Under the pieces are notes generated by a model. The model worked only from the letters and a program-made list of their open reading frames with translations. It made no database searches and was not told where the DNA came from. Below are positions 10,211 through 56,059 of a stretch of 64,000 nt of DNA, one piece after another. A program made the position numbers and the translations under genes. Numbering within the stretch: position 1 is the first letter of the stretch; each line of letters opens with the position of its first letter. The stretch covers positions 124,001 to 188,000 of the IMG/VR virus record IMGVR_UViG_3300033182_000980. The stretch is one strand, 5' to 3'.

Positions 10211-11488
10211 TCACCCTAAGAACCTTCCTACCTTAACAATCACTGACTCCTCATCCGAACGAATGTCTCCCTCCCAAATCACAAGGCAATCCAGCCCCAC
10301 CTCCGCATAAGCCTCTATCGTATTACGCTCATGCTCCTCTTTACTCATTCCTGTTAACGCTTGTGAGTGCCAATACCTACCAAAACACTCGACCACCTTT
10401 GTAGCACCCCTATAAGGATGTTCGGGATCATCACTCACACAAACTACAAAGTCTGGGTTCTTAAAGCCACCAATCGAACCGTCAAAGTTCTTCTTGCTTG
10501 GAAGAAATCTCCAATATGCCCCATTACCTGTAAAGGTGAGATTGTCGCTATATGAAGCTACCCTCGACTCAAACTTGTTCATCTCTTTCTGACTCATAAG
10601 CAAGATAGGGAACTCCACACCATACCTTGCTTTTAGAGTATCTTGAACCTTACCCCAATGTCCCTCAATAGCACCTGGAAACTCAACCCCATAACGATCC
10701 ATCATCGTAGCCCTAATCTCCCCCTTGCCTTGCTCGGACGCAAAGTAGTGGCTTCCATAGTTTTCAATCATCGTCTTGAGTTGTTTCTGCCTAAACTCCT
10801 CCACAGCACTCGTGTAAGGCACACCGTATCGCTCCATGTTAGTCGCTACAACCTTCTCCATGACTTCTTCACTCATGCTAGGGATCGGCACTCCATAACG
10901 CTCTATATTCGTTGCCTCAATCTTAGCCCTTAGCTCTGCTGACCCGAATAGCGTCCCACCATACCTCTCAAGATTAGTAGCCAATGTCTTAGCCTTGACC
11001 CCATCATTCTGTTGAGGGTTGACTACACCATATTTCTCAAGGTTCGTCTGCTTGATCTTATCCTGTACGCTCTCCCAAGCAAAAGGGTTATCCTTACCCT
11101 TTAAGATTGGACGCTTACCATCAAGAGCCTCTTGCACCTTTTCAAAGACACTACTCTCCTTTGAGAAAGGGTTCTCTGCACCATAACGCTTGAGGTTAGT
11201 CTGTTTACGCTTCTCCACAGACTCTTTGCTGTGGGCAGGATTCTCAACCCCATAACGATTTAACATAGTTTGTTTGCGTCTAAACTTTGAGATCGCTTTC
11301 TTATCTCGACTTTGCCATACCCCACATCCACTCTTATGTCTTTTCATCTGTGAGTTTGAGGTAGATTCATGTCCACAGATACATGGTGTGATTGGTTCGG
11401 GTTTCCAGTTAGGCCAGCACTTTGCCATGTGGCGGCTATTGATTCGATCCCCTTTGAACTCTCTTTTACAGTGAGGGCAAGTAGCCAT
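10211..11488 (-). CDS. Putative homing endonuclease (Zn fingers, YG repeats, Vsr/DUF559-like nuclease)
   Basis: N-terminal CPHC and C.CGH motifs; nine (R/K/N)YG repeats; C-terminal NPDFV...VVECFGRYWH...CLVIWE. Confidence 0.8.
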   Translation of the reverse strand: MATCPHCKREFKGDRINSRHMAKCWPNWKPEPITPCICGHESTSNSQMKRHKSGCGVWQSRDKKAISKFRRKQTMLNRYGVENPAHSKESVEKRKQTNLKRYGAENPFSKESSVFEKVQEALDGKRPILKGKDNPFAWESVQDKIKQTNLEKYGVVNPQQNDGVKAKTLATNLERYGGTLFGSAELRAKIEATNIERYGVPIPSMSEEVMEKVVATNMERYGVPYTSAVEEFRQKQLKTMIENYGSHYFASEQGKGEIRATMMDRYGVEFPGAIEGHWGKVQDTLKARYGVEFPILLMSQKEMNKFESRVASYSDNLTFTGNGAYWRFLPSKKNFDGSIGGFKNPDFVVCVSDDPEHPYRGATKVVECFGRYWHSQALTGMSKEEHERNTIEAYAEVGLDCLVIWEGDIRSDEESVIVKVGRFLG

Positions 11489-11661
11489 AAGTAAATCCTT
11501 TCTGCTTGAGTTAGGGTTTACTTATATGAAAAGTAAGCAATCGGTCAAGACTTTTTGTCCTACCCCACAGCCCACATAGGGTTCAAAATATACCCTCAAA
11601 GTACAGATACCAACACCATACTTTCGTTGCTTACCTCAATACGCCTCTGCCTACATAGGGA

Positions 11662-12546
11662 TCAAAGAAAGTTTCGAGGTGCTAAAACGCCCCGACCCAC
11701 ATGGGGTCCGAAGGCGGAGCGGATACCCACACCGTACTTGGGCTGTTTTAACCCACGCATATATTTTGTAGTGCGAGCTTTTGCTTCGACAGACATCGAC
11801 CACATTTGCTCGGCAGAGGATTTGAGTCCTTCATACTTGCTTGATCTGTCGATGTTGAGTGAGATGCCACCTATCGAATAGTCAAACTCGTCCACGATCC
11901 AGTTTGCTTGTAGAGCCATAGCCGCAAACTGTATAGCACCTTGAAGGATAGGGGTTCTCCAAGCAGGTTTTTGGTTTACGAGAGCATCGAGGTTTTGGAG
12001 TTCTTCAGTTTCGGGTGGTTGCATATTCCACCAGTCTAAAGCTCGCTCTAGGTACTCTAGGAACTCCTCGTCCTCCCACACTTGACCAAAGACTCGGTTG
12101 TACGAACCGATATTCGCTTCATGCTCTGGTGGTCTGAAGTGATAATACTTGTCTGGGCAGTTGTGGACAACCACATCAGAACCTTCGAGTACAAGGTTAT
12201 GGTTCTCCTCAACAGTAAGGTCGAACATAAAGGGTCTGTTTTCGATGACCTCGATATTGGAAATCTTAGTTGTTCCTTGTGATGTCTGTAAGCTAAGTCC
12301 TACGGACAGCTCTTCTGCTGGAACACAAAGGTTAGGAGACATATAGACTCGGTGTCCACCTGTGATAGTGAGATGTTTACCTTGCTCTGTGGTGATTTTA
12401 TAAATGGGTTCAATAGGTGTAGGGTTCTTATGGGCTTTAGAGATCTGCTTCCAAGAGAAATCACCTTGAGTGTCCATAGATTTGATTGATAGCTTCCCTT
12501 TTTTGAAAGCGTCTTTAATCTTCTGTGTTTGTTCTTGAGATGTCAT
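11662..12546 (-). CDS. C-half of fractured gene: IntC (aa 1-129) plus 165-aa C-extein, putative virion neck/head-completion protein
   Basis: Intein block B ITGGH, block F MFDLTVEENHNL, block G VVHN followed by +1 Cys. Own RBS AAGGAG; ATGA overlap with the upstream stop. Confidence 0.9.
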   Translation of the reverse strand: MTSQEQTQKIKDAFKKGKLSIKSMDTQGDFSWKQISKAHKNPTPIEPIYKITTEQGKHLTITGGHRVYMSPNLCVPAEELSVGLSLQTSQGTTKISNIEVIENRPFMFDLTVEENHNLVLEGSDVVVHNCPDKYYHFRPPEHEANIGSYNRVFGQVWEDEEFLEYLERALDWWNMQPPETEELQNLDALVNQKPAWRTPILQGAIQFAAMALQANWIVDEFDYSIGGISLNIDRSSKYEGLKSSAEQMWSMSVEAKARTTKYMRGLKQPKYGVGIRSAFGPHVGRGVLAPRNFL

Positions 12547-13418
12547 AGTCCCAACTCCTTTTCAGTCCATGTTTGGTAAGACCAACCATTATCTTCAGCA
12601 ACTTTTTGAGACAGGGCTAACCTAGCGATAACATCTTCTCGGTTTAAAGCCCATTGTGGTTTAACTTCAACAAGAGTAGTAGATCCATCTTGATAGTGGA
12701 CAACAAAGTCGGGGAGTATTGTTCTTCCAGCAACTTTGTATATTGGCTCATAGGTATAGCTTTTGACATTAGGGTCTGACTCTAAGATGGAGATTGTCTT
12801 TGCTTCATAGCTTGAGCGAACACGAACCTCATCTTTATTGCCTTTAGGAGTAGCCTCTATTGAGGTTTTGCCTCTAAGGTAAGGTGTTGGGTTCTCTTTC
12901 ATTCTAATCGCTTGATCGTTCGATCTCCTTGCTCTTTCTTCGGGATCGTGGTGAAAGTCCATGAGCTTCTGCTTCACATCTGGATTTCCCCACACATCCT
13001 CTAAACTGTGGGCAGAAGCCTTTGCTTTGGAAATCGGATTGTCCCACCCCTTTTTAAGATTATCACGCTCATGTTGTGGTCGAACTCTCCCCCGATGGAA
13101 GTCAAAGTCTCCTTTAGCCCATTGTTTTTTTAGTTGCTCAGACCTATCCATACCTTTGGTAGATCGACCTGCATTAGCACCTAGCTTCTTGCGTTTGTCT
13201 TGAACTGCTTTACAGCCTTTCGCTTTGGTCAGCCTCTGAATAGACCCGTTGGAAAGACCTGTGATTTCGGTCATCTCTTTCCAAGAGAACCCTTGCTTAT
13301 GGAGATGTGAAACAAGAGCAGAACGCTTTTCTACAATCTCTTTAGCTACTCGACCTTTTTTGTTCAGTTGCTCTATTGTGAGGTCAAACTTAACTAGCAG
13401 TTCTTCAAGCATTTTCAT
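12543..13418 (-). CDS. Free-standing endonuclease (HTH plus TnsA-like PD-(D/E)XK domain) lying between the intein halves
   Basis: N-terminal HTH GFSWKEMTEITGLSNGSIQR; C-terminal RSSYE...DPNV..Y.YEP...PDFVV.Y.DG...LVEVKP; RBS AGGAG. Confidence 0.8.
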   Translation of the reverse strand: MKMLEELLVKFDLTIEQLNKKGRVAKEIVEKRSALVSHLHKQGFSWKEMTEITGLSNGSIQRLTKAKGCKAVQDKRKKLGANAGRSTKGMDRSEQLKKQWAKGDFDFHRGRVRPQHERDNLKKGWDNPISKAKASAHSLEDVWGNPDVKQKLMDFHHDPEERARRSNDQAIRMKENPTPYLRGKTSIEATPKGNKDEVRVRSSYEAKTISILESDPNVKSYTYEPIYKVAGRTILPDFVVHYQDGSTTLVEVKPQWALNREDVIARLALSQKVAEDNGWSYQTWTEKELGL

Positions 13419-13905
13419 CTCCTATGATGTCATATAGTTCTTCGATAGGGAGTGTGATCTTTTCACCGTCAGCATCAACAGTGACGAGTTCTTCTCCAGC
13501 AAGGCACTGATCTCTAAGGAGCATACGCAACTTATAGATCATTTGTTTTTGACCCTCGGTGAGTTGTAATCCGAGTACAGCGTTCTCTGCGACTACCCCG
13601 AACTCTTGGACAACCGTTTGGGGTTGGCTGTTGACCAACTCTTTGAGCGTCCATCGTATGCGATAGCGACCATAGGTAGCTGTGGTGGGTATGCGTACAG
13701 AGGCATAGTATTCACCAACAGATGGGTTTTCTGGTATGCGAGCAGGATCACCAATGAGTACATCAGTTTCGGGTGGTCCAGGATCAACATAATAAAGTGC
13801 GTAAGTGATCTCGGCGGCGTTTGCGACATTCCCATTTGAGTTTGTGAGGAAGATGTCGAGGTCGCCACGAGAGAGGATTTGATTTCTTTTAAATGCTACA
13901 GCCAT
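13405..13905 (-). CDS. N-half of fractured gene: 133-aa N-extein plus 33-aa IntN
   Basis: Ends LRDQ/CLAGEELVTVDADGEKITLPIEELYDIIGDENA, i.e. intein block A; Cys codon at 13506-13504; RBS AAGGAGG. Confidence 0.9.
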   Translation of the reverse strand: MAVAFKRNQILSRGDLDIFLTNSNGNVANAAEITYALYYVDPGPPETDVLIGDPARIPENPSVGEYYASVRIPTTATYGRYRIRWTLKELVNSQPQTVVQEFGVVAENAVLGLQLTEGQKQMIYKLRMLLRDQCLAGEELVTVDADGEKITLPIEELYDIIGDENA

Positions 13906-14017
13906 GATGTGAGCCTCCTTTAATAAAGGTTGGGTTATAAACGAGCTAAAAATCCTCTTAATATCTTTTATATTGTAGGGGTTTAGTAAGTTATACCAAT
14001 TACAAAGGAGATACCTT

Positions 14018-14545
14018 ATGTGTGTGATTACAGAGGGGATTACAGCTCAACTGCTTAAAGGGGGTCTAGTCCGACTCAATGACGGATCTGTTTATAGGTT
14101 AGAAGACTGCAAGCTAGAAGCAGGGGGTCGTCTTGTTCTTGCTGTGGGTATTAAAAGGGAGAAGCCTAGACCGAAGCCTAGACTAAAAATAGTGGGGGAA
14201 GTGAACCTTGAGGGAGTAGAGGTGAGTTTGGGTGATTTCTCTTTGGAGACACAAGAGATCATCTTACACCCACCTAAAGAGCCACCACCTCCATTTGAAC
14301 CTCCAGCTACTCTTATTCCTTTTAGTGTTGTGGGAGCGACTTTGCTTTATCTGCTCAAGAAGGTGTCTGGTCTTGATCGTAAGTTAAAGCATGGTTCATG
14401 TGAAGTAAGACATCAAGAAGCGATTACTCGTATTGCGAAGTTAGAGGGTAAGGTCTTGAGGAAGCAGGTTGTGGACGGGGGTAAAGCAGTTAAAGCTAAA
14501 CTTGATGAGAGGAAGGCGAATAAGGGTAATGATGGGGGAGTCTAA
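14018..14545 (+). CDS. Membrane protein, possibly holin-like
   Basis: One TM segment followed by a coiled coil (CEVRHQEAITRIAKLEG); directly upstream of a CHAP-containing gene. Confidence 0.45.
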   Translation: MCVITEGITAQLLKGGLVRLNDGSVYRLEDCKLEAGGRLVLAVGIKREKPRPKPRLKIVGEVNLEGVEVSLGDFSLETQEIILHPPKEPPPPFEPPATLIPFSVVGATLLYLLKKVSGLDRKLKHGSCEVRHQEAITRIAKLEGKVLRKQVVDGGKAVKAKLDERKANKGNDGGV

Positions 14546-14601: not shown

Positions 14602-15987
14602 ATGAAAATACTTGTAGGTGGAGATGTCAGCTTTGGAAGAATCTATGAAGATGAGAGGATTTCTTATTCAGCACCTTTGTGTTTAGCTTCCATAGGCGAG
14701 TTGGAGCGAGATTATTGTATCTTTAATCTTGAGAGCCTTTTTTGCGATGACTGGAAGGCAAATAAAAGAGATGTAGATGAGAAGTGGGGTACGAGCTACA
14801 CCCATGCTAATCCAGAAGATGTGAAGCATCTCATTGAGTGTGATGTAGATCATGTTTCCTTAGCTAACAACCATACACTTGATTGGGGTGAGGCAGGGGT
14901 CGAACAGACCTGTAAAGTCCTCAACAAGTTTGGCATCTCACATTCTGGATGTGGTTCTAATGATAGGACTCACATAGATAAAGAGAAGAAAATAATAGTG
15001 TTCTCGATAGATACGGTTGAGTGCCACTACAAAAAAGAAGATCCTTTAAACTGCAAAGAGGACATCAAAGACTTCTTTAAAGAGGTTAAAGAGCTTAGAG
15101 CAAAGCACGAGGATTACCTTCTGATTTGTTGTGTTCATTGGGGTCGGTTTAGGGTGAGTCCGAACAAGGGTCAGAAATCTATGGGTCGGAAGCTCATCGA
15201 CTGTGGCATTGATGTTGTTTTAGGTAATCATTCACATAAGGTGCAATACTTCGAGATGTACAAGGGTAAGCCTCTGTTTTACTCATTAGGGAACTTGTAC
15301 TTCACTCATAGAAATCCAGAATACAATAAGCCACCAAATGTTCATTACGCTTACCTCTCAACTCTTAACTTTGAGGGGCGAGATTTTAAAGGTGTAGACC
15401 ACCATCAAACTTGGTGTGACGATAAGAAGGTGGTTCTTAAAGAGGAGAAGCCCTCTAATCTTGGATTAGAAGCGTTGAGGTTTGCTCGGAGCTATATTGG
15501 CTTTGGGGAGTCCGAGCATACGACTAATGTTGGTTGGTTTATGAAGCACATAGACGCACCCAATAAGGAGACAGCGGCGTGGTGTGCGAGGTTTGTATTT
15601 TACTGTATTAAGAAAGCCTGTGAAGAGAATGGTATTGATCCAGTCCTAGAGAAGAATGACAAGACTGGATATGCTAAAGAGCTTTATAAGCAGATTGCAG
15701 AGATCGGGTATGTCTCATTAAATCCTATGCCTGGAGACATTATCGTTTGGGACAGGAAAGAGGAAGGAAACAAGAACGGACATATCGGGATAATAGAGTA
15801 TGTAGAGGGAGATAAGATCACAGCCATTGAAGGAAACAGAGCACCAAATCCTGGTTCAAAGGTTGATCGTTTTACTTACTCTTTGAACGAGCTTTTAAAC
15901 TACAAAGAGTGGGATGACGAAGATAAGCATTTCCATCTTTTTGAAGGGTTTGCTCGCCTACCTCATCTTAAAAAGTTGGACAAGTAA
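14602..15987 (+). CDS. CapA-family metallophosphoesterase fused to a CHAP amidase/peptidase
   Basis: CapA motifs GD, NLES, LANNHTLDWG, HWG, GNHSH, YSLGN. CHAP motifs AWCARFV, PGDIIVW, GHIGIIE, IEGN. Confidence 0.85.
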   Translation: MKILVGGDVSFGRIYEDERISYSAPLCLASIGELERDYCIFNLESLFCDDWKANKRDVDEKWGTSYTHANPEDVKHLIECDVDHVSLANNHTLDWGEAGVEQTCKVLNKFGISHSGCGSNDRTHIDKEKKIIVFSIDTVECHYKKEDPLNCKEDIKDFFKEVKELRAKHEDYLLICCVHWGRFRVSPNKGQKSMGRKLIDCGIDVVLGNHSHKVQYFEMYKGKPLFYSLGNLYFTHRNPEYNKPPNVHYAYLSTLNFEGRDFKGVDHHQTWCDDKKVVLKEEKPSNLGLEALRFARSYIGFGESEHTTNVGWFMKHIDAPNKETAAWCARFVFYCIKKACEENGIDPVLEKNDKTGYAKELYKQIAEIGYVSLNPMPGDIIVWDRKEEGNKNGHIGIIEYVEGDKITAIEGNRAPNPGSKVDRFTYSLNELLNYKEWDDEDKHFHLFEGFARLPHLKKLDK

Positions 15988-16826
15988 TGAAGATACTAGT
16001 TGGAGGAGACATATCCTTTGGTCGTATTTACAAAGGAAAAGAAATCCATTATGGCACTGATGGGTGTCTAACCGAGCTTGCTTTGATCCCTAGAGATTAT
16101 TCTATTTTCAATCTTGAGAGTCCTCTCACAAGGAAACCAAGAGTGAAACTACCTAAGCCACACGCTGGTGTTTATTTGTATGGTGAGATCAGTGATGTTA
16201 GGCATCTTTTAGACTCAGATGTGGACTATCTCTCTCTAGCCAACAATCACGCTATGGACTTTGCTTCAAGTGTCGAAGATACAATCTCCACTCTTGATAA
16301 GGTTGGCATCTCACATTCGGGTACAGGCACAGACTATTTGAAGCCCCATATAGATCACGATCTTGGGTTGGCGATTTTCTCAGCCGACTTAATCGGTAAG
16401 TATGCGTATGAAGATCCTGTCTGTTGTGGCCCTTACTTTCTTGACTTGTTGGTAAAAAAAGTCATCCCTCATTATCGAAAGCTAATTCCCGATTATGCGT
16501 TCCTATGTTGCGTACATTGGGGAGCTGAATATGAAATGCCAACTGAGGAGCAAAAGAGGGTCGGTAAAAGGCTCATTGATTGTGGTGTGGATATGGTTAT
16601 CGGTCATCACCCTCATGTAATACAGCCTATGGAAGTCTATAAAGGTAAGCCTATTTTTTATTCTTTAGGCAACTTGTACTTTACTCATCACAGGAAAGAC
16701 TTAGAAGCGAGGGATGATACACATCTTGGTTGCTTATCTTTAGTTGAAATGAATGGTAGAGAGTATGTAGGGCATACCGATTACCATACATGGACGATAA
16801 GTGGAGAGAGAGTGTTTTTGTTATGA
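15987..16826 (+). CDS. CapA-family metallophosphoesterase (standalone paralog)
   Basis: GDISFGR, NLES, LANNHAMDF, HWG.EY, GHHPHVIQP, YSLGN. Confidence 0.9.
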   Translation: MKILVGGDISFGRIYKGKEIHYGTDGCLTELALIPRDYSIFNLESPLTRKPRVKLPKPHAGVYLYGEISDVRHLLDSDVDYLSLANNHAMDFASSVEDTISTLDKVGISHSGTGTDYLKPHIDHDLGLAIFSADLIGKYAYEDPVCCGPYFLDLLVKKVIPHYRKLIPDYAFLCCVHWGAEYEMPTEEQKRVGKRLIDCGVDMVIGHHPHVIQPMEVYKGKPIFYSLGNLYFTHHRKDLEARDDTHLGCLSLVEMNGREYVGHTDYHTWTISGERVFLL

Positions 16827-49375: not shown

Positions 49376-49449
49376 GCACCCATAGCTCAGCTGGATAGAG
49401 CACCACTTTCCTAAAGTGGGTGTCGCAGGTTCGAGTCCTGCTGGGTGTA
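49376..49449 (+). tRNA. tRNA-Arg(CCT)
   Basis: Cloverleaf; anticodon arm CCACT-TTCCTAA-AGTGG. Confidence 0.93.
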
Positions 49450-49692
49450 CTAGGTTCTCCCACCATTCCTTTATTTTAACTAGGGGAAATTAGGCTTACA
49501 ATGGTGGGAGGGTCTTATCCTAGACAATAACCTTAGAAAATAAAGAACTGCTTACAAGTCTAGGAGTAAGCCTGTAATCCCTCAAAATCTACCATGTGGG
49601 GGGTCGCCGTGAGATAATGTGGTGGGGTGATTCTCTCTGACCTAGTTAGTCCAAACTTGAGAGATTTCTATTGATAATCATGGAGTATAGTC

Positions 49693-49770
49693 ATGGGAAA
49701 CCCTAACTATCCATCCAAGTCCGGAAACCCAAGTGGTGGTGGACGCGGAAATACCCCGAAGTCTAAATGA
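49693..49770 (+). CDS. 25-aa G/P/N-rich peptide
   Basis: MGNPNYPSKSGNPSGGGRGNTPKSK with a GGAG RBS 7 nt upstream. Confidence 0.45.
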   Translation: MGNPNYPSKSGNPSGGGRGNTPKSK

Positions 49771-50097
49771 GACTTGACAAGATCAACCTTGACCTCTTAA
49801 ATGAGGTCGTGTTGAACAATGCCTTGTGTCTTACCCAGACATTCCTTACCCTTTGATCTGTGGGGTAGGCAAATCAGATCAGCTCTTTCTTCTTTGGAAG
49901 ATACTCCCCCTAGTTGTTCCGTAGGGTAGAGCGAAAACGGAACGCTTAATATGTCTGACTCCTCTTGGTGGAGCTTGTCGGGTTCGACTCCCACAGATGT
50001 ACTAGACCCTCATATCTTTTTCATTCTACATATTAACTTAGCTTTTATGTTGAATGGTGTATTGGGATAAAGTATGAGTTTTTGAGGGTCTAACTTT

Positions 50098-50171
50098 GCA
50101 CCAGTAGCTCAGTTGGATAGAGCAGTGGCCTTCTAAGCCATTGGTCGTAGGTTCGAGTCCTACCTGGTGCG
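50098..50171 (+). tRNA. tRNA-Arg(TCT)
   Basis: Cloverleaf; GTGGC-CTTCTAA-GCCAT. Confidence 0.95.
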
Positions 50172-50173
50172 TT

Positions 50174-50275
50174 TGCTTGATTGGTATTCAACCTCTTATT
50201 GGAGAGTCATCTCTAATAGGGTTGGTGCTTCTTTAAGAGGTTCAAACTCTGGTTCGATTCCAGATCAAGCAACCA
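50174..50275 (+). ncRNA. tRNA-like RNA with encoded CCA and non-canonical core
   Basis: Acceptor TGCTTGA/TCAAGCA plus ACCA; T-arm TCTGG-TTCGATT-CCAGA; 67-nt interior with a long hairpin. Confidence 0.6.
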
Positions 50276-50599
50276 CTCCCTGTTCCTAATAGGAACTCTT
50301 CAAACGGACGCATAGAGGGAATGGGGAAACAGACAAGCGTTTGCCGAAAGGGTCTTGTCTGGGGGATGCTTACGCTTCTGATTGCCACCGTAGATGAAGA
50401 TGTAGCTCTTGGGGAACTATGGTTTCGCAACATAACCTAACCAAGAGGGGAGTATTCCAAAAATGTTTAAAGGTGAAGCGAGGGCATTACACCAATGCGA
50501 ATACGGTATCGGGGAAGTCTGCTCATTCCTCTCGTTCACATCTCATCTATCTTTGGTAGAAGGGGTGTGAGCCAATCTTATGTCAAAAAGGAATGTGTC

Positions 50600-50872
50600 A
50601 TGTCTAAGAGAGTAGAAGATCTAAGAATTCTTGTGAACAAGAAAATGAAGCTCGATAAATACTTGAGTATCTGTGAGGGGCTTCATTATGTTTGTTTTTT
50701 CATGCTCATCTTCTATGTAGTCACATTCAAGAATGGAGACACACCTTATTTGATTTCTTGGGCGTTTCTTGCACTTATTGGTTGGGTAGCTACAACGATA
50801 CTTGAGAAGAAGATAGTCCAAGTGAAACTAGAAATGACATCAGAGTTGTTTGAAAGTAAATCGCAAGAGTAG
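50600..50872 (+). CDS. Small two-TM membrane protein
   Basis: Two hydrophobic segments; start reassigned to 50600. Confidence 0.55.
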   Translation: MSKRVEDLRILVNKKMKLDKYLSICEGLHYVCFFMLIFYVVTFKNGDTPYLISWAFLALIGWVATTILEKKIVQVKLEMTSELFESKSQE

Positions 50873-50935
50873 CTCAGTCGGTAGAGCGTCAGCCTTCCAA
50901 GCTGAATGTCGCGGGTTCGAGACCCGTCTCTTGCT
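50863..50935 (+). tRNA. tRNA-Gly(TCC)
   Basis: Cloverleaf; TCAGC-CTTCCAA-GCTGA. Confidence 0.95.
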
Positions 50936-51005
50936 TTGACCCCAAGTTCATTTCCTTTTTCGATTTGAGCGTTGACCTTTGGGTTATGGTCTTGGGGTTT
51001 CTTTT

Positions 51006-51079
51006 GCTCACTTAGCTCAGTTGGTTAGAGCAACGGACTGTTAATCCGTGGGTCCAAGGTTCAAATCCTTGAGTGAGCG
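51006..51079 (+). tRNA. tRNA-Asn(GTT)
   Basis: Cloverleaf; ACGGA-CTGTTAA-TCCGT. Confidence 0.95.
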
Positions 51080-51187
51080 TACCTCCTTTGGTTGGTGGTT
51101 AAGAGCAACCATGATCCCTCATGTAAATGGGTTGTGCAAAGATAGCTTCTAGGTTGTTGGTCGCTTCTTTGTTTAGGGATCGCTTAT

Positions 51188-51259
51188 GTACCTGTAGCTC
51201 AACGAACAGAGCCTCATCGTTGTAGATGAGAGGTCTAGGTGTAAGTCCTAGTGGGTACA
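51188..51259 (+). pseudogene. Degenerate tRNA-Thr-like element
   Basis: All stems pair, but the anticodon loop is 8 nt (CGTTGTAG), the T-loop is TGTAAGT and the D-loop lacks GG. Confidence 0.6.
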
Positions 51260-51659
51260 AGTTGGAGTTAAGTAAGTGTCTGCTGTCGGGGGTTCGTTAA
51301 CATTTCCCTTCCGACAGAAGTCTCCCCATTACTAAGCTAGTCGAAACCCACCACATGGGGTGGCGTAAATGACATATTACTTAACTTGAGTAGTGATACT
51401 CTACATATACCAGCAAATGGTATATGTAGAATCCTACCCTTACAGGAGAAATCCTGTAAGCAGTTATACTAATGAAAATGTTAGCATTGGGCTTTACGCT
51501 GATGGTGGTATGCACTTGGAGGGTCTAAGCCTACCCTACCCTGAGACTCATTCAACCCTTATTCGTTTAAGGGGAGTGTACTCATAGTAGAAATGACTAG
51601 AACTGGTCTAGGATTTCCCTAGACCTTACTACTATGGGTAGATTAGGTCTACCCGCTTT

Positions 51660-51742
51660 GGACAGGTGGCCGAGTGGTTAAAGGCATCAGACTGTAAATC
51701 TGACCTCGTGAGAGTACGCAGGTTCAAATCCTGCCCTGTCCA
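51660..51742 (+). tRNA. tRNA-Tyr(GTA)
   Basis: Class II cloverleaf; TCAGA-CTGTAAA-TCTGA. Confidence 0.95.
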
Positions 51743-51762
51743 CTATCAAGGAGTTTCAACAC

Positions 51763-52023
51763 ATGAGTACAAAAGCTACCATCGCACATGGTGATGATTT
51801 CCATGTCTACCAGGAGATGTTTGAGGGTGATGCAGTCTACCTCCAAATAGATAAGCATGGTGGGTTCGTTCAGATCATTGGCGATAGAGTCACTATAAGC
51901 CTACCTCCAGAGCTTTTAGACAAGATCGCAAGGGGTTGGCTAGAGAACCGAGAAAAGTTCGATACAGAGCCAAATACAGAGCTTAATCTTGAGGGGTTGA
52001 AGAAGCTACGATCAGAGTCGTAA
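51763..52023 (+). CDS. Hypothetical protein
   Basis: RBS AAGGAG. Confidence 0.65.
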   Translation: MSTKATIAHGDDFHVYQEMFEGDAVYLQIDKHGGFVQIIGDRVTISLPPELLDKIARGWLENREKFDTEPNTELNLEGLKKLRSES

Positions 52024-52036
52024 CCCCTTATTTATA
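52020..52036 (+). promoter_or_regulatory. Motif A variant (GTAACCCCTTATTTATA)
   Basis: One mismatch. Confidence 0.55.
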
Positions 52037-52148
52037 GCCTAGTGTATCAACAACCACTAGGAGCAAGAATGAGCTTTGTAATCATGTCCGTCATCTTCGC
52101 TATGGTGTTCGCACCAGCGTTTGATTTACACCTCTACTTGAACAAGGT

Positions 52149-52165
52149 GTAACCCCTTATCTATA
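52149..52165 (+). promoter_or_regulatory. Motif A
   Basis: Exact copy. Confidence 0.65.
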
Positions 52166-52188
52166 TCACTTCGTAAAGGAGAACAAAA

Positions 52189-52398
52189 ATGCCATACGAC
52201 TTAAACTACAACCACTTCAACTATGTCCGGTCTTTTGAGCGTGAGATCAAGTCTCACCTTGAGAACCCCGACCTCCCCTTCCTTGCTCGGCAGTTTGCCA
52301 TGATGGGCTGTGGGAGAAACTACCTCGATGGGACTCTCGTCTGGCCCCATGAGAGCCTTGATCGGTCCATCATCTCCTCAAAGAGTATAAGCTCTTAG
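52189..52398 (+). CDS. Hypothetical protein
   Basis: Motif A plus AAAGGAG RBS. Confidence 0.65.
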   Translation: MPYDLNYNHFNYVRSFEREIKSHLENPDLPFLARQFAMMGCGRNYLDGTLVWPHESLDRSIISSKSISS

Positions 52399-52597
52399 AC
52401 ACGCTTCGAGGCTTCTTCGAGTATGACTGTCGGTTGTCCGAGGAGAGCGATCTCAAGGTGCTTAGTAAGGGGGCTGATGAGGACATCGTGGCTTTCCTTG
52501 TGGAGAACCCCGATCCACGCTACTTCACACTCCCCGACTAAAAAAACTTGCAAGGTAGCCTTTAGATCATATAAAAGACTCACCCCACCACACTTAC

Positions 52598-52669
52598 GGT
52601 CCATTCGTCTAGTGGTAAGGACTCCGGCCTTTCACGCCGGCAACACGGGTTCAAATCCCGTATGGATCA
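52598..52669 (+). tRNA. tRNA-Glu(TTC)
   Basis: Cloverleaf; CCGGC-CTTTCAC-GCCGG. Confidence 0.95.
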
Positions 52670-52756
52670 TTAGGTGGGTTAAGCCAAGCAGATAGGGTAG
52701 TTTGAATACCTATACTGACTGGCCCCTAATGCGTTTAACCCTTATGTGAGTCCATT

Positions 52757-52972
52757 ATGAAAAAAGTTAAGTTCACCAAGAAAGACGGCAAGAAATCGTA
52801 CATTGAGGTCGATCAGTCTTTGCTCAAGAATAAGATCATTTCCCTGTATGCTGATAACAAGCCCTATTCATTGCAGAGCTTTCTAAGCAATCCCATGTCC
52901 TTTTCAGTAGAGCGTGTTAACTATCAGAGGTTCAACTATTCGGACGGGAGTTTTGAATACAAGGAGATGTGA
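52757..52972 (+). CDS. Hypothetical protein
   Basis: Coupled small-ORF run. Confidence 0.55.
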   Translation: MKKVKFTKKDGKKSYIEVDQSLLKNKIISLYADNKPYSLQSFLSNPMSFSVERVNYQRFNYSDGSFEYKEM

Positions 52973-53190
52973 TGTTTAAAGACAAGTGGGTTGAAAAGAG
53001 GGATAAAGCTCGTGCGTATAAGGTCTTGTCTTTGAACCACCTCACCGACAAGGTGGCAGACCCTGTAGATAAAGCTAAACTTAAAGAGCTGATCTCAGTT
53101 TATTTAGATGCCCATGACTTTACGACTAGGGTAGGTTTAGAGATCGCTAAGTATGAAGATAAATACTCTGTTAAAAAGGAGAAAGAATGA
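52969..53190 (+). CDS. Hypothetical protein
   Basis: RBS AAGGAG; overlaps the upstream stop. Confidence 0.6.
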   Translation: MMFKDKWVEKRDKARAYKVLSLNHLTDKVADPVDKAKLKELISVYLDAHDFTTRVGLEIAKYEDKYSVKKEKE

Positions 53191-53320
53191 TGTTTGGAGA
53201 CAGAACGATTTACTGTCCTCGATGTAAGCGAGAGACTTGGGACGGAGCTTCTTGTCCAGCGACCAACAGGACTAAAAAGTGTCAAGACTCCGAGGTTGAA
53301 AAGACTCGGAAGCCTAAGAC

Positions 53321-53554
53321 ATGAAGTGGTGGTACTTTCAGAGGGTGGGCGAGAAACTGAAACTTGCACCTTTAGATTTCTTTACATATCGCCCCTCTGA
53401 TGCTACCCCTTCGGATAACCCTATGACCCCTTGGTATGACCTCTACAATCACATTGATGAGGTTCATGTTCATGTGCAAGCAGAAACCTACGAAATCGCC
53501 TTAGCTTTAGCCTACCTCATGGTTAAGGAAAAAGAGGCTTCAATCGAGGTATAA
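53321..53554 (+). CDS. Hypothetical protein
   Basis: ATGA overlap with an unlisted 45-aa CxxC ORF at 53187-53324. Confidence 0.55.
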   Translation: MKWWYFQRVGEKLKLAPLDFFTYRPSDATPSDNPMTPWYDLYNHIDEVHVHVQAETYEIALALAYLMVKEKEASIEV

Positions 53555-53585
53555 AGAGACTCCCAATCATATAAGAGTGGCATGA

Positions 53586-53658
53586 GGGCTGTTAGCTCAA
53601 TCGGTAGAGCACCGGACTTTTAATCCGTTGGTTCTGGGTTCGAGTCCCAGACGGCCCA
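53586..53658 (+). tRNA. tRNA-Lys(TTT)
   Basis: Cloverleaf; CCGGA-CTTTTAA-TCCGT. Confidence 0.93.
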
Positions 53659-53680
53659 TTATTTAAACACTCTTGTATGA

Positions 53681-54013
53681 TTGGAGATGTCAGTGATCTA
53701 TGACAAGACTAAACTAGATGGGCATTGGTATTGCTCTACCCAGTTTCAAAAGGTGGGGGAGTTTGTGTTCTCCCTCCTCCATAATGACTTTGACCCCGAA
53801 GAAGCAGGTCGGGTGATCTATTGGGCGATTTGTAATCTTGCCGATACTGGATATGTGCGAAAGGGTATGTTGACCACCCTTGATGGGATGCTCGCAGACG
53901 AGGGCATATCTGTTGAAGATAAAAGGTATGCTCGGCTCGTAAGGGGGTATGTGGACAACTATGACTTTGGTTTGGAGCGTACCCCTAAGAACTGGCATAG
54001 GAGTACAAAATGA
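53681..54013 (+). CDS. Hypothetical protein
   Basis: ORF track; ATG at 53687 has a GGAG RBS. Confidence 0.6.
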   Translation: MEMSVIYDKTKLDGHWYCSTQFQKVGEFVFSLLHNDFDPEEAGRVIYWAICNLADTGYVRKGMLTTLDGMLADEGISVEDKRYARLVRGYVDNYDFGLERTPKNWHRSTK

Positions 54014-54585
54014 GTGATAAATCTGATCTTAAAATGCTGGTCAAGGTGGTGAACACCTTACAAGAGGAATCCGACAATCGTTTCATCAAGGGCATGATTA
54101 CTCGGATACAGGGATTGATTGAGACAATGGAGCAAGACCTTAACCTCAAGGTTGAGACTACAGACACCTATGCTCGTAAGGAATACTTTAAGGACTATGT
54201 GGTCAACAGATATAGCCCTATCATCAACCAAGAGGTTTATGCCTATGAGTTTGTGCGTGGGAAGATCCGAAAGAAGTTTCCAATCGTATTGAAAGAAATC
54301 ACTAAGGAGATCATTAGGGTGAGTCGTGATGGCTACCTTGCTTCCGAGCTACCTCAACACAGCTCTTATTGGAGGGATTGTCATTGTGTAGCTGGAGAAG
54401 ATCCTTATGAGAACCTTGATAACTGTCGTGCTCATTATTGGCGTGAATATCGTACAGATAAAGACCCAGTAGAGTGGTGGAGTAAAGAGCCATTCTTAGG
54501 TCGTAAGGTTCGAGTATGGAAGAAAGATTTAGCTCTGCCAGAGCCTTCATTAAGTGAAAAAATGCAGTCAGTTAAGAAGGCATAA
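54010..54585 (+). CDS. Hypothetical protein
   Basis: ATGA overlap; RBS AGGAG. Confidence 0.65.
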   Translation: MSDKSDLKMLVKVVNTLQEESDNRFIKGMITRIQGLIETMEQDLNLKVETTDTYARKEYFKDYVVNRYSPIINQEVYAYEFVRGKIRKKFPIVLKEITKEIIRVSRDGYLASELPQHSSYWRDCHCVAGEDPYENLDNCRAHYWREYRTDKDPVEWWSKEPFLGRKVRVWKKDLALPEPSLSEKMQSVKKA

Positions 54586-54799
54586 TCATATAATAGATAT
54601 GTGTTCTTAACGAGTGTCATAAGGAGTTGAATATGACCCTACAACTATTTGTAACCTTCGCTATCTGCTTCATGTCTGGTGGCATACACTTTTCAAACTA
54701 CAAGCTGTCGAGATCAACTTGGACCTGGTATGTGATTGCAGTCCTGTTCTCAATCCCAGCTTTTACTAAAGTCATCACAATGGCTCAAGGATAAGAATA

Positions 54800-55105
54800 A
54801 TGAGCGAGAAAAAAGTCTATACGATAAGAAGAAAATATGGTTGGGATGTCTATTCTTACTATGAGGGTTGGAAAGAGATTGAGCTAACCGAGGAGCAAAT
54901 CGCAGAGGTTCGTGCTAACCCAGACTTGCTTGATGATGATGAATGGTTAAATAAAGCCTTTGATTGGGTGGATATGGATGAGGAGGAGCTGGTCACAGAC
55001 TCTTGGTGTAAGGGTAGTGTTGACCAAATGCCCCTAGAGACTGAGTTTGATTTCTACATTGAGGATCTTACAGGAGAAGAGGATGAGTCGGAAGATCAAG
55101 GTTAA
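54800..55105 (+). CDS. Acidic hypothetical protein (paralog A)
   Basis: KY.W....YEG.KEI...LV.D.WCKG is shared with the next ORF. Confidence 0.7.
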   Translation: MSEKKVYTIRRKYGWDVYSYYEGWKEIELTEEQIAEVRANPDLLDDDEWLNKAFDWVDMDEEELVTDSWCKGSVDQMPLETEFDFYIEDLTGEEDESEDQG

Positions 55106-55398
55106 ATACGAGTGGACAATCTGGGCTCACTACGAAGGGTATAAAGAGATTGATGTTGATGAACACCCAGAGCTTTTAGAGAAGATCAAAGACAACTTTG
55201 AATCTGTCGAGGACTTACAAACTGACATGAATACATGGGACTATGTATGTGAGGATATTTGTGAGATCGAAGGTGAACATCTTGTATCTGATGAGTGGTG
55301 TAAGGGTGGGGGTTAATCAGATGCCATTCAAGATTGAACTGACAAACATTGAGTTTGATGAACTGTTGCATCCAGAGGAGGATGAAGAAGATGAGTAA
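55083..55398 (+). pseudogene. Acidic paralog B, frameshifted at a G5 run
   Basis: Stops at 55316; removing one G at 55308-55312 restores ...WCKGGVNQMPFKIE...EEDE, collinear with paralog A. Confidence 0.65.
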
Positions 55399-55573
55399 TG
55401 AAGTAAACCTATACGCTATCTTGTCGGATAAGGGAGAGGTGATTAAGACCTCACATGGATTGTACTACTTTACGAGGTCAAAGGCTCGTGAAGCTCGGAA
55501 AGAGGTTGAGGGTAAGGCTCGCATTGTGAAGCGTTCTTATAATGCCAACAGCACATGGGTGACAGCAAAATGA
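55391..55573 (+). CDS. Hypothetical protein
   Basis: MSNEVNLY start overlapping the upstream stop. Confidence 0.55.
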   Translation: MSNEVNLYAILSDKGEVIKTSHGLYYFTRSKAREARKEVEGKARIVKRSYNANSTWVTAK

Positions 55574-55797
55574 GAGCACTTGAGCGACAACATCTAGGTC
55601 AGCTTTTCATTTACTGCATCAACAATGATGTACCTAAAGAAGAAATCGGTGCAATCATGTGGTGGGTGTGTGAGAACAACTTGTTCTTAAAGAGAGACAT
55701 TCAGAGCAAGCTCTCCAAAGAGCCTTTGAAAGACCACCCTTATGCCTTGATTGTGCGTGAAGCAGAAGATTGCAACGCATTTGGTATAAGAGGGTAG
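55570..55797 (+). CDS. Hypothetical protein
   Basis: ATGA overlap. Confidence 0.55.
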   Translation: MRALERQHLGQLFIYCINNDVPKEEIGAIMWWVCENNLFLKRDIQSKLSKEPLKDHPYALIVREAEDCNAFGIRG

Positions 55798-55840
55798 TAG
55801 ACAAGCCACATTGTCTTGTATAGTGTGGCATTCAAGCGAT

Positions 55841-55922
55841 GCCTAGATGGTGGAATCGGTATACACAGGAGACTTAAAATCTCCCGACTTCGGTCTTGTG
55901 GGTTCGAGTCCCACTCTAGGTA
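55841..55922 (+). tRNA. tRNA-Leu(TAA)
   Basis: Class II cloverleaf; GGAGA-CTTAAAA-TCTCC. Confidence 0.95.
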
Positions 55923-55927
55923 TTTAA

Positions 55928-56000
55928 GGGCCTGTAGCTCAGTGGTCAGAGCGACCGTCTCATAAACGGTTGGTCATGGGTTCAATCCCCATCGGGCCCA
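55928..56000 (+). tRNA. tRNA with CAT anticodon (elongator Met or Ile2)
   Basis: ACCGT-CTCATAA-ACGGT; G1:C72 is paired, so not an initiator. Confidence 0.9.
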
Positions 56001-56059
56001 CTATTTATCTACTCGCTAAATGCTAATCATATAAAGGTGGGTGTAAAAAAAACTACAAG

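Follow-up and report, generated by a model that had tools for sequence, protein, structure and literature searches.

Can a viral gene that is broken into two separate reading frames still give rise to a single protein? This question is raised by a stretch of 64,000 nucleotides from the IMG/VR virus record IMGVR_UViG_3300033182_000980 (positions 124,001 to 188,000 of that record), hereafter called the window, in which three tightly coupled open reading frames (ORFs) of the minus strand lie within positions 13905-11662, namely an N piece, an endonuclease and a C piece. An earlier sequence-only reading had seen there a split intein interrupting a putative virion gene. The locus is identified here as a fractured gene whose predicted intein is naturally and atypically split, a free-standing endonuclease lying between the two halves, and trans-splicing of the two pieces appears very likely. 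The fuller reading, in which a functional trans-splicing intein is kept mobile by a TnsA-like homing endonuclease, is regarded as probable.

The N piece (ORF 13905-13405, minus strand, 166 residues) consists of a 133-residue N-extein ending in ...KLRMLLRDQ, followed by a 33-residue N-terminal intein fragment (IntN) and a stop codon. The C piece (ORF 12546-11662, minus strand, 294 residues) opens with a 129-residue C-terminal intein fragment (IntC) and continues with a 165-residue C-extein, the motifs TGGH, FDLTVEENHN and ...VVHN being met in this order before CPDKYYHFRPP. By scripted count, the two exteins add up to 298 residues (133 + 165). Between them, the endonuclease ORF overlaps both neighbours, at one end the stop codon of the N piece and at the other, through its own stop codon, the C-piece start (ATGA, 12546-12543). 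The ORF coordinates, the intein blocks and the lengths of 33 and 129 residues proposed by the sequence-only reading agree with this recount in every detail, and the Shine-Dalgarno sequences that it had attributed to each of the three ORFs (AAGGAGG, AGGAG and AAGGAG, respectively) can be read from the DNA (Table 1). Its coupled endonuclease of 291 residues also stands as far as the ORF and the stop/start overlaps are concerned; the start has to be moved, since AGGAG directly abuts ATG 13418 and sits 6 nucleotides before ATG 13412, and since the relatives P0272-P0275 are 289 residues long. The true start is therefore probably ATG 13412, giving a protein of 289 residues.

The intein nature of the two fragments is supported by several comparisons. 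The C piece passes the Pfam model Intein_splicing PF14890 with 38.5 bits for a gathering cut-off of 35.8, and it matches solved mini-inteins in a PDB sequence search (MJ0781 KlbA, 6e-4; NpuDnaB, 0.016; Pho RadA, 0.02). The IntN, in turn, aligns with the first ~31 residues of uninterrupted (cis) mini-inteins found at the same site in relatives (P0043, L008, P0122 and P0127). Moreover, the cis intein of L008 can be aligned over its first 90 residues with the Pyrococcus PolII mini-intein 5bkh (E 5.7e-5), this alignment running through C..G...IL....G....TL.ELY.L., which places the break of the window intein after the first hairpin and helix, well before block B. The features of a class-1 intein are all present, that is Cys1 directly after LRDQ, block B of the TxxH type, blocks F and G, a C-terminal Asn and a Cys at +1. 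The split itself is of the atypical kind, with 33 residues on one side and 129 on the other, and with the block-B TGGH on the IntC side.

If the two exteins belong together, relatives devoid of intein should carry them as one protein, and such relatives are indeed numerous. A search of the C-extein against 5.8 billion proteins returned 1161 relatives, of which more than 100 are uninterrupted proteins of ~298 residues; most of the closest ones are exactly 298 residues long and have no Pfam domain. In the intein-less P0002, P0003 and P0010, the junction reads LRDQ-NPDKYYHFRPP. The nearest comparison is offered by a viral contig (L011) bearing one uninterrupted gene, whose N- and C-extein parts are respectively 99.2% and 98.8% identical to those of the window at the protein level, the comparison of the C-extein covering L011 residues 135-298; for the N-extein, nucleotide identity is ~90%. 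The DNA alignment of the window with L011 stops at 13508 and restarts at 12156, the insertion corresponding to 13506-12160 (1347 nucleotides), and the +1 codon specifies Asn in L011 and Cys in the window. Among GenBank phages, tblastn detected gp319 of the Tunturiibacter phage Tunturi_5, a single ORF of 283 residues that matches both pieces in order and reads ...RELLSDE-DPDRNYHFRPP... across the window junction ...MLLRDQ-intein-CPDKYYHFRPP...; its depositors annotated it as a head-tail connector protein. The 179-residue gp165 of phage G was considered as proof that the exteins are independent proteins and was dropped in that role, because it spans the junction (LRVMLKD-LPQD) and merely does without the N-terminal immunoglobulin (Ig)-like domain. 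In their homologs, both exteins are thus to be regarded as one protein and not two, as the sequence-only reading had expected, and its predicted joined product of 298 residues finds its equivalent in intein-less homologs of exactly that length, with exteins up to 99% identical and continuous over the junction.

Besides the empty site, this one gene displays every stage of gene breaking: a cis mini-intein, a split intein with endonuclease, and a split intein after endonuclease loss (Table 1). Among the cis alleles, P0043 is a protein of 450 residues encoded on a 350-kb contig. The more diverse split contexts were found through contigs encoding relatives of the endonuclease, whereas a locus search with the single endonuclease sequence gave near-identical copies only. 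Among the split alleles, L002 corresponds to the 485-kb genome of an uncultured phage (GenBank LR745208.1), with exteins 53-64% identical to those of the window, and L051, L053 and L054 were reached via endonuclease relatives that are only 38-45% identical. When aligned onto the cis inteins, all split alleles break in one loop, after the helix IEELYDII and before KIK.AF..G.L.I.S. In L009, the stop after the IntN and a fresh ATG for the IntC are kept with ~90 nucleotides between the pieces. The split C piece P0047 is ~90% identical to the P0043 cis intein over the intein part; in this lineage, cis and split forms have therefore been converted into one another recently.

The protein encoded between the two pieces is predicted to be a homing-type relative of TnsA. 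It matches the TnsA-like family PF08722 (36.7 bits versus a gathering score of 26.5, E 6.6e-9) and, below the cut-off, the NCBIfam model TnsA_like NF033179 (7.4e-10, 38.7 bits versus 110). Its N-terminal helix-turn-helix is conserved (iTGLS.G.iqRlT.A), as are the C-terminal motifs vRSSYE, lPDF and EVK, which at least 90% of 86 relatives retain; the putative catalytic residues E205, D237 and E251-x-K253 reproduce the E...PD...ExK pattern seen in TnsA and other PD-(D/E)xK enzymes. No sequence relative was detected in the PDB, and no Vsr match in Pfam or NCBIfam. A role as the TnsA transposase subunit itself was ruled out, the score being far under the NCBIfam cut-off and the neighbours being intein pieces, without TnsB or TnsC. 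In all four diverged contexts (L002, L051, L053 and L054) the endonuclease is lodged within the same split intein, and its ORF is absent from the empty and the cis alleles. At the sequence level, the comparison of the window with L006 indicates that the composite element travels from genome to genome as a whole: IntN, endonuclease and IntC share 95-100% nucleotide identity (dS, the synonymous divergence, 0.05-0.13) except in one patch of 100 nucleotides, whereas the exteins share 69-82%, with dS saturated in the N-extein, and the identity falls sharply at both splice junctions. Given this high identity of the unit, the much lower identity of the exteins and the sharp edges, the composite unit has been exchanged recently between diverged genomes. 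Homing into an empty allele would be expected to result in such an exchange.

From these data, the following history may be proposed. A class-1 mini-intein would have been acquired between Gln133 and residue 134 of a conserved huge-phage gene coding for 298 residues, and a gene for a TnsA-like PD-(D/E)xK homing endonuclease would then have inserted in the loop after the first helix of the intein, thereby giving a stop to the upstream piece as well as a Shine-Dalgarno sequence and an ATG to the downstream one. Three proteins would be made, probably from one transcript: the N-extein with the acidic 33-residue IntN, the endonuclease, and the 129-residue IntC with the C-extein. The IntN would dock on the nearly complete IntC and restore the HINT fold, so that Cys1, the block-B His, the terminal Asn and the +1 Cys could perform trans-splicing and release a 298-residue protein with the junction LRDQ-CPDKYY. 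The endonuclease would take no part in splicing; it would cut intein-less alleles during co-infection and thereby keep the IntN-endonuclease-IntC unit mobile.

Other explanations for this layout have nevertheless to be weighed. An improbable one is that the pieces form a non-covalent complex, the intein halves serving only to dimerise and no peptide bond being made. Phage enzymes assembled from fragments without splicing do exist, such as Aeh1 NrdA (PMC3045599), and the penultimate His of the intein is not conserved among relatives. In addition, the net charge of the IntN ranges from -7 to -9 in 8/8 split alleles and that of the first 45 IntC residues from +1 to +7, a complementarity that agrees with the electrostatic capture known for other split inteins and would suit plain binding equally. 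On the other hand, Cys1, the block-B His, the terminal Asn and a +1 Cys or Ser are retained in every split allele examined, Cys1 being present in 8/8 split IntN pieces as well as in 4/4 cis alleles, and docking would need none of them. Of the 146 intein-less alleles, 139 have Asn in front of PD(K/R), whereas the 35 alleles bearing an intein have Cys (21) or Ser (14) there. As far as these alleles go, the +1 nucleophile is confined to genes that carry an intein, which is predicted by active splicing and would be needless for a mere docking module. A gene killed by a selfish insertion and now decaying as a pseudogene, its protein being dispensable or replaced by a second copy, is very improbable. 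Huge phages do carry many dispensable genes, and a second, very distant N-extein-like match lies nearby in L008 and L039; however, all ORFs are intact with their Shine-Dalgarno sites, and the ratio of nonsynonymous to synonymous divergence (dN/dS, Nei-Gojobori) remains within 0.02-0.10 in all four segments, exteins as well as intein halves, while dS is substantial. More precisely, it amounts in comparison with L011 to 0.017 (N-extein) and 0.026 (C-extein), and in comparison with the split allele L009 to 0.098 (IntN) and 0.080 (IntC), at dS ~0.8-1.2; by these estimates, purifying selection acts strongly on each of the four. Furthermore, lineages in which endonuclease identity has dropped to 38% still show the same split, and L009 has retained it after losing the endonuclease.

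Just as remote as the pseudogene is the removal or bypass of the intervening 0.86 kb at the level of RNA or translation, followed by splicing of a cis-intein precursor. Group I introns with endonuclease ORFs are common in huge phages (PMC12880540), and Vsr-like endonucleases are known from introns and not only from fractured genes (PMC2677866). In the window, however, an Rfam scan of 11400-14100 on both strands with E up to 1 returned no RNA family, no ribozyme and no intron signal that would point to such a removal, a possibility which the sequence-only reading had itself raised. The insert consists nearly entirely of ORF that is conserved as protein, with overlapping stops and starts and a Shine-Dalgarno sequence for each piece, and even the short interval between the pieces of L009 still holds a stop and a fresh ATG. 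The least probable of all is an assembly or sequencing artefact, i.e. a frameshift in, or a chimera of, a cis intein with a nested endonuclease domain. The window does come from a metagenome assembly, but an identical or near-identical layout is found in several independent assemblies and samples (L004, L005, L006, L007, P0001, P0004 and P0271-P0278). The endonuclease lies in a different frame, with its own Shine-Dalgarno sequence and start, and the three-part arrangement recurs in diverged relatives, down to ~50% extein identity; judged from this recurrence, the arrangement is far beyond chance.

Some observations weigh against the reading as a functional and mobile split intein. The case for splicing is built on sequence analysis. 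The PF14890 score of the C piece barely exceeds the cut-off, and the cis allele P0043 scores 31.4 on the intein profile, which is under it. At the penultimate intein position, relatives have His, Ser or Gly, and the alleles therefore need not all be equally active. Finally, a scan for promoter-like and terminator-like sites gave results at chance level, and the single transcript is thus assumed; there is no terminator-like site between the ORFs on the coding strand, and one transcript for the three ORFs is plausible.

Table 1. Features of the fractured gene in the window, alleles found at its intein site in relatives, and split forms of a second intein. Coordinates without prefix are window positions.
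Feature	Coordinates	Strand	Description
N-extein	13507..13905	-	133 codons, MAVAFKRNQ...LRMLLRDQ; predicted Ig-like beta-sandwich and one helix
IntN	13408..13506	-	33 codons, CLAGEELVTVDADGEKITLPIEELYDIIGDENA; Cys1 (block A), beta-hairpin, helix alpha1; net charge -9
IntN stop TGA	13407-13405	-	ends the N piece
Endonuclease ORF	12543..13418	-	free-standing; 291 residues from ATG 13418, 289 residues from ATG 13412; N-terminal helix-turn-helix, C-terminal TnsA-like PD-(D/E)xK domain (predicted)
IntC	12160..12546	-	129 codons, MTSQEQTQKIKDAF...TGGH...FDLTVEENHNLVLEGSDVVVHN; block B (TxxH), blocks F and G, terminal His-Asn
C-extein	11662..12159	-	165 codons and stop, CPDKYYHFRPP...PRNFL; +1 Cys is the TGC codon 12159-12157
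Shine-Dalgarno AAGGAGG	13914..13920	-	8 nucleotides upstream of the N-piece ATG (13905)
Shine-Dalgarno AGGAG	13419..13423	-	for the endonuclease, within the IntN coding sequence; spacing 0 to ATG 13418, 6 nucleotides to ATG 13412
Shine-Dalgarno AAGGAG	12555..12560	-	for the C piece, within the 3' end of the endonuclease ORF; 8 nucleotides before ATG 12546
Allele, empty site			L010-L038; uninterrupted gene
Allele, cis mini-intein			P0043, L008, P0122, P0127; 152-159 residues, identical position
Allele, split with endonuclease			window, L002, L006/L007, L051, L053, L054
Allele, split, endonuclease reduced	L009:4903-5001		L009; 33-codon remnant of the endonuclease at these positions
Second intein, split	L009:5001-7344; L042:4593-7158; L045:4701-7137

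The intein discussed so far is not alone in this gene. A search of representative clusters (307 clusters at E up to 1e-3), complemented by a census against P0003, points to the small host gene as an intein hot spot. In relatives, the C-extein hairpin contains a second site (WIVDEF/(D)YSIGG), which is occupied by an intein starting with Ser1 and followed by Ser or Thr at +1; the window is empty at this site (11884-11879). This second intein is of the cis type in L006 (L006:5001-6392), while in L009, L042 and L045 it is atypically split after ~35 residues by a 315-residue Vsr-like endonuclease, for which the L009 copy matches TIGR00632 vsr (1.3e-7). It thus represents another candidate for a Ser-based split intein with a short IntN, Ser1/Ser+1 being the residue pair of cysteine-less split inteins. 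In L009 (L009:4407-7344), the gene is distributed over three ORFs, the first combining the N-extein with the first IntN, the next one the first IntC, the middle extein and the second IntN, and the last one the second IntC and the C-extein, and one 298-residue protein would here need two different trans-splicing reactions. A third site, six residues downstream of the first, is seen in the 454-residue P0200 (LRDINPDRDY/SIAGEELLNV...ILAHN/SFSAPS), and the N-terminus of its intein resembles those of the inteins at the first site.

The TnsA-like and Vsr-like endonucleases found at the first and second sites are of unrelated types. A tentative view, to which we give slightly less than an even chance, is that this gene family is a natural laboratory in which each of them invaded the loop after helix alpha1 of a different mini-intein, the resulting units homing as wholes and L009 requiring two orthogonal reactions, one based on Cys and the other on Ser1/Ser+1, for one protein that may belong to the virion. 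If this is true, the loop after alpha1 would be a general second entry site for endonucleases in inteins, and the family would offer dozens of ready-made orthogonal pairs with a short IntN.

The role of the rejoined protein is the weakest link of the interpretation. The intein-less homolog P0003 was modelled by AlphaFold2 with 41 relatives (predicted local distance difference test score, pLDDT, 79.9). In the model, residues 3-105 form an Ig-like beta-sandwich and residues 117-129 a helix that ends just before the intein site at 133/134; past the junction, there is a helical domain (163-179, 190-223 and 238-261) with a hairpin (227-234) and a conserved extended tail. Such a helix-hairpin-helix with a long tail presumably recalls head-to-tail adaptors. 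With the full-length model, Foldseek gave only generic Ig-like matches in the PDB, all with E above 1e-3, and in BFVD it retrieved gp165 of phage G (6e-9, TMt 0.72), on which no literature was found, together with uncharacterised phage proteins. The C-extein was also modelled alone (AlphaFold2 model m5e2edc213bb7, pLDDT 78.7), and its top three Foldseek matches in the PDB (9cc7_C, 9c39_D and 8gtd_M) are a PhiTE connector chain, an Sf14 neck chain and an R4C portal-adaptor chain.

The sequence-only reading had assigned the protein to the neck or to head completion. In its favour, these connector chains rank at the top, and 7 of the 41 relatives match phrog_17327, a "head-tail connector protein" family (best E 8.6e-6). 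The same fold matches are, however, non-significant (E 0.23-1.0, template-modelling score at most 0.25), and other results speak against the assignment: the N piece, the C-extein and P0003 match no Pfam, PHROG or NCBIfam family; a profile of 41 family members yields chance matches only among PDB sequences; PHROG scans of ten neighbouring genes reveal no structural context. Whether the host protein is a head-to-tail connector or adaptor could therefore go either way. If it is, these phages would need protein trans-splicing to assemble their virions, a consequence that inherits the uncertainty of the connector role.

Around the fractured gene, several further elements were noticed. Directly downstream lies a homing-endonuclease-like gene of the DUF7487 / phrog_3339 type (10211-11488, minus strand, 425 residues). 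It is 89-97% identical to that of L006, the flanks beyond being at ~50%, and a homolog occupies the same place in L002, L051 and L054, as well as in the intein-less L011. By its distribution, it looks like a second, independent mobile endonuclease tied to the host gene. A 13-nucleotide inverted repeat (11487-11525; 92% complementary, 13-nucleotide loop) stands immediately upstream of its ORF start, and hairpins upstream of free-standing endonuclease genes have been described (Dassa et al. 2009, PMC2677866). A 27-nucleotide direct repeat is present in three imperfect copies (70-81%; 11561-11587, 11640-11666 and 11686-11712), one being in the last codons of the C-extein (FGPHVGRGV) and two in the 173-nucleotide spacer before the DUF7487 gene; P0001, P0002 and L042 instead extend 23 residues beyond ...NFL. 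These repeats may be the scar of the insertion of an endonuclease gene at the 3' end.

On the other side, a 175-residue ORF without family match (14018-14545, plus strand) forms an indel beside the fractured gene, being absent from the otherwise collinear L011 (alignment gap ~14550-13969). In L002 (L002:1405-2529) and L051 (L051:1361-2485), a 374-residue ORF with no counterpart in the window lies directly upstream of the N piece and overlaps its start; an N-terminus rich in helix-turn-helix elements and a ...Y(L/T)PDFWVT... motif make it a possible further PD-(D/E)xK endonuclease. Next come, on the plus strand of the window, two adjacent paralogous ORFs (14602-15987 and 15987-16826) sharing a near-identical N-terminus, MKILVGGD(V/I)SFGRIY, the former also having an endolysin/CHAP-like C-terminal region (phrog_21357, 4e-9). 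Further away, nine tRNA genes (49376-56001, plus strand; Arg-CCT, Arg-TCT, Gly-TCC, Asn-GTT, Tyr-GTA, Glu-TTC, Lys-TTT, Leu-TAA and Met-CAT) form a cluster that fits a huge phage, and the sequence is also present on a 375,691-bp IMG/VR contig.

Where does the locus stand among the systems already described? Fractured genes with split inteins and free-standing homing endonucleases are mainly phage-borne and have been explained by a gene-breaking model (Dassa et al. 2009, NAR; PMC2677866). The 26 loci described there code for enzymes of DNA synthesis, repair or packaging, their inteins are canonically split into a long IntN and a short IntC, their endonucleases belong to two families, GIY-YIG and Vsr-like (EDxHD), and the 3' end of the endonuclease gene supplies the start of the downstream intein piece. 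The window shares with them the order of extein-N with IntN, endonuclease ORF, and IntC with extein-C, an endonuclease ORF that at its 3' end overlaps the IntC start and contains the Shine-Dalgarno sequence for it, and a set of empty, cis and split alleles that fits gene breaking. It differs from them in its host protein, which is non-enzymatic and possibly structural, in its split after helix alpha1 (33/129), and in its endonuclease, predicted to be a TnsA-like PD-(D/E)xK protein and neither GIY-YIG nor Vsr-like. Fractured genes would thereby be extended to a new type of endonuclease and to a host protein other than a nucleic-acid enzyme. As compared to TnsA and to other PD-(D/E)xK nucleases, including the homing endonuclease I-Ssp6803I, the window endonuclease has the same C-terminal restriction-endonuclease-like domain with E/D/ExK; unlike TnsA, it comes without TnsB and TnsC, carries an N-terminal helix-turn-helix and is always found inside a split intein in the contexts examined. 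With regard to connector and adaptor proteins (phrog_17327 and Tunturi_5 gp319), the helical core, the beta-hairpin and the long conserved C-terminal tail are alike, whereas the window protein has an extra N-terminal Ig-like domain and no recognisable structural module around its gene.

Natural split inteins with a short IntN are rare, four lineages having been found in the literature, all in DNA enzymes: AceL-TerL (25/104), GOS-TerL (37/115), VidaL (PDB 6vgv) and PolB16 OarG (15/168). As an IntN of 15-37 residues can be synthesised, such inteins are sought for protein semisynthesis and labelling. The window intein resembles them in its short IntN, the 33 residues of which fall within their range, and in its long and nearly complete IntC; with the class-1 TerL representatives it also shares Cys1 and Cys+1. 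VidaL is the sole atypical intein surfacing in the PDB sequence search, where it matches the window only at E 0.57, and common descent with the atypical TerL inteins (AceL-TerL, GOS-TerL and the VidaL lineage) is not supported by this search; the best N-terminal match is the Pyrococcus PolII mini-intein. Its host is neither a terminase nor a polymerase, and no intein was found described for this protein family in the literature searched, of which the journal coverage was incomplete. Splicing rates have been measured for the known atypically split inteins, while splicing of the window intein is predicted from sequence. To these inteins, the locus would add a lineage of independent standing (33/129, Cys1/Cys+1) that has numerous natural orthologs, cis forms included. 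Taken together, these comparisons support well the view that it represents a new lineage of a rare but known class rather than a new principle, its novelty lying in the host protein and in the type of endonuclease.

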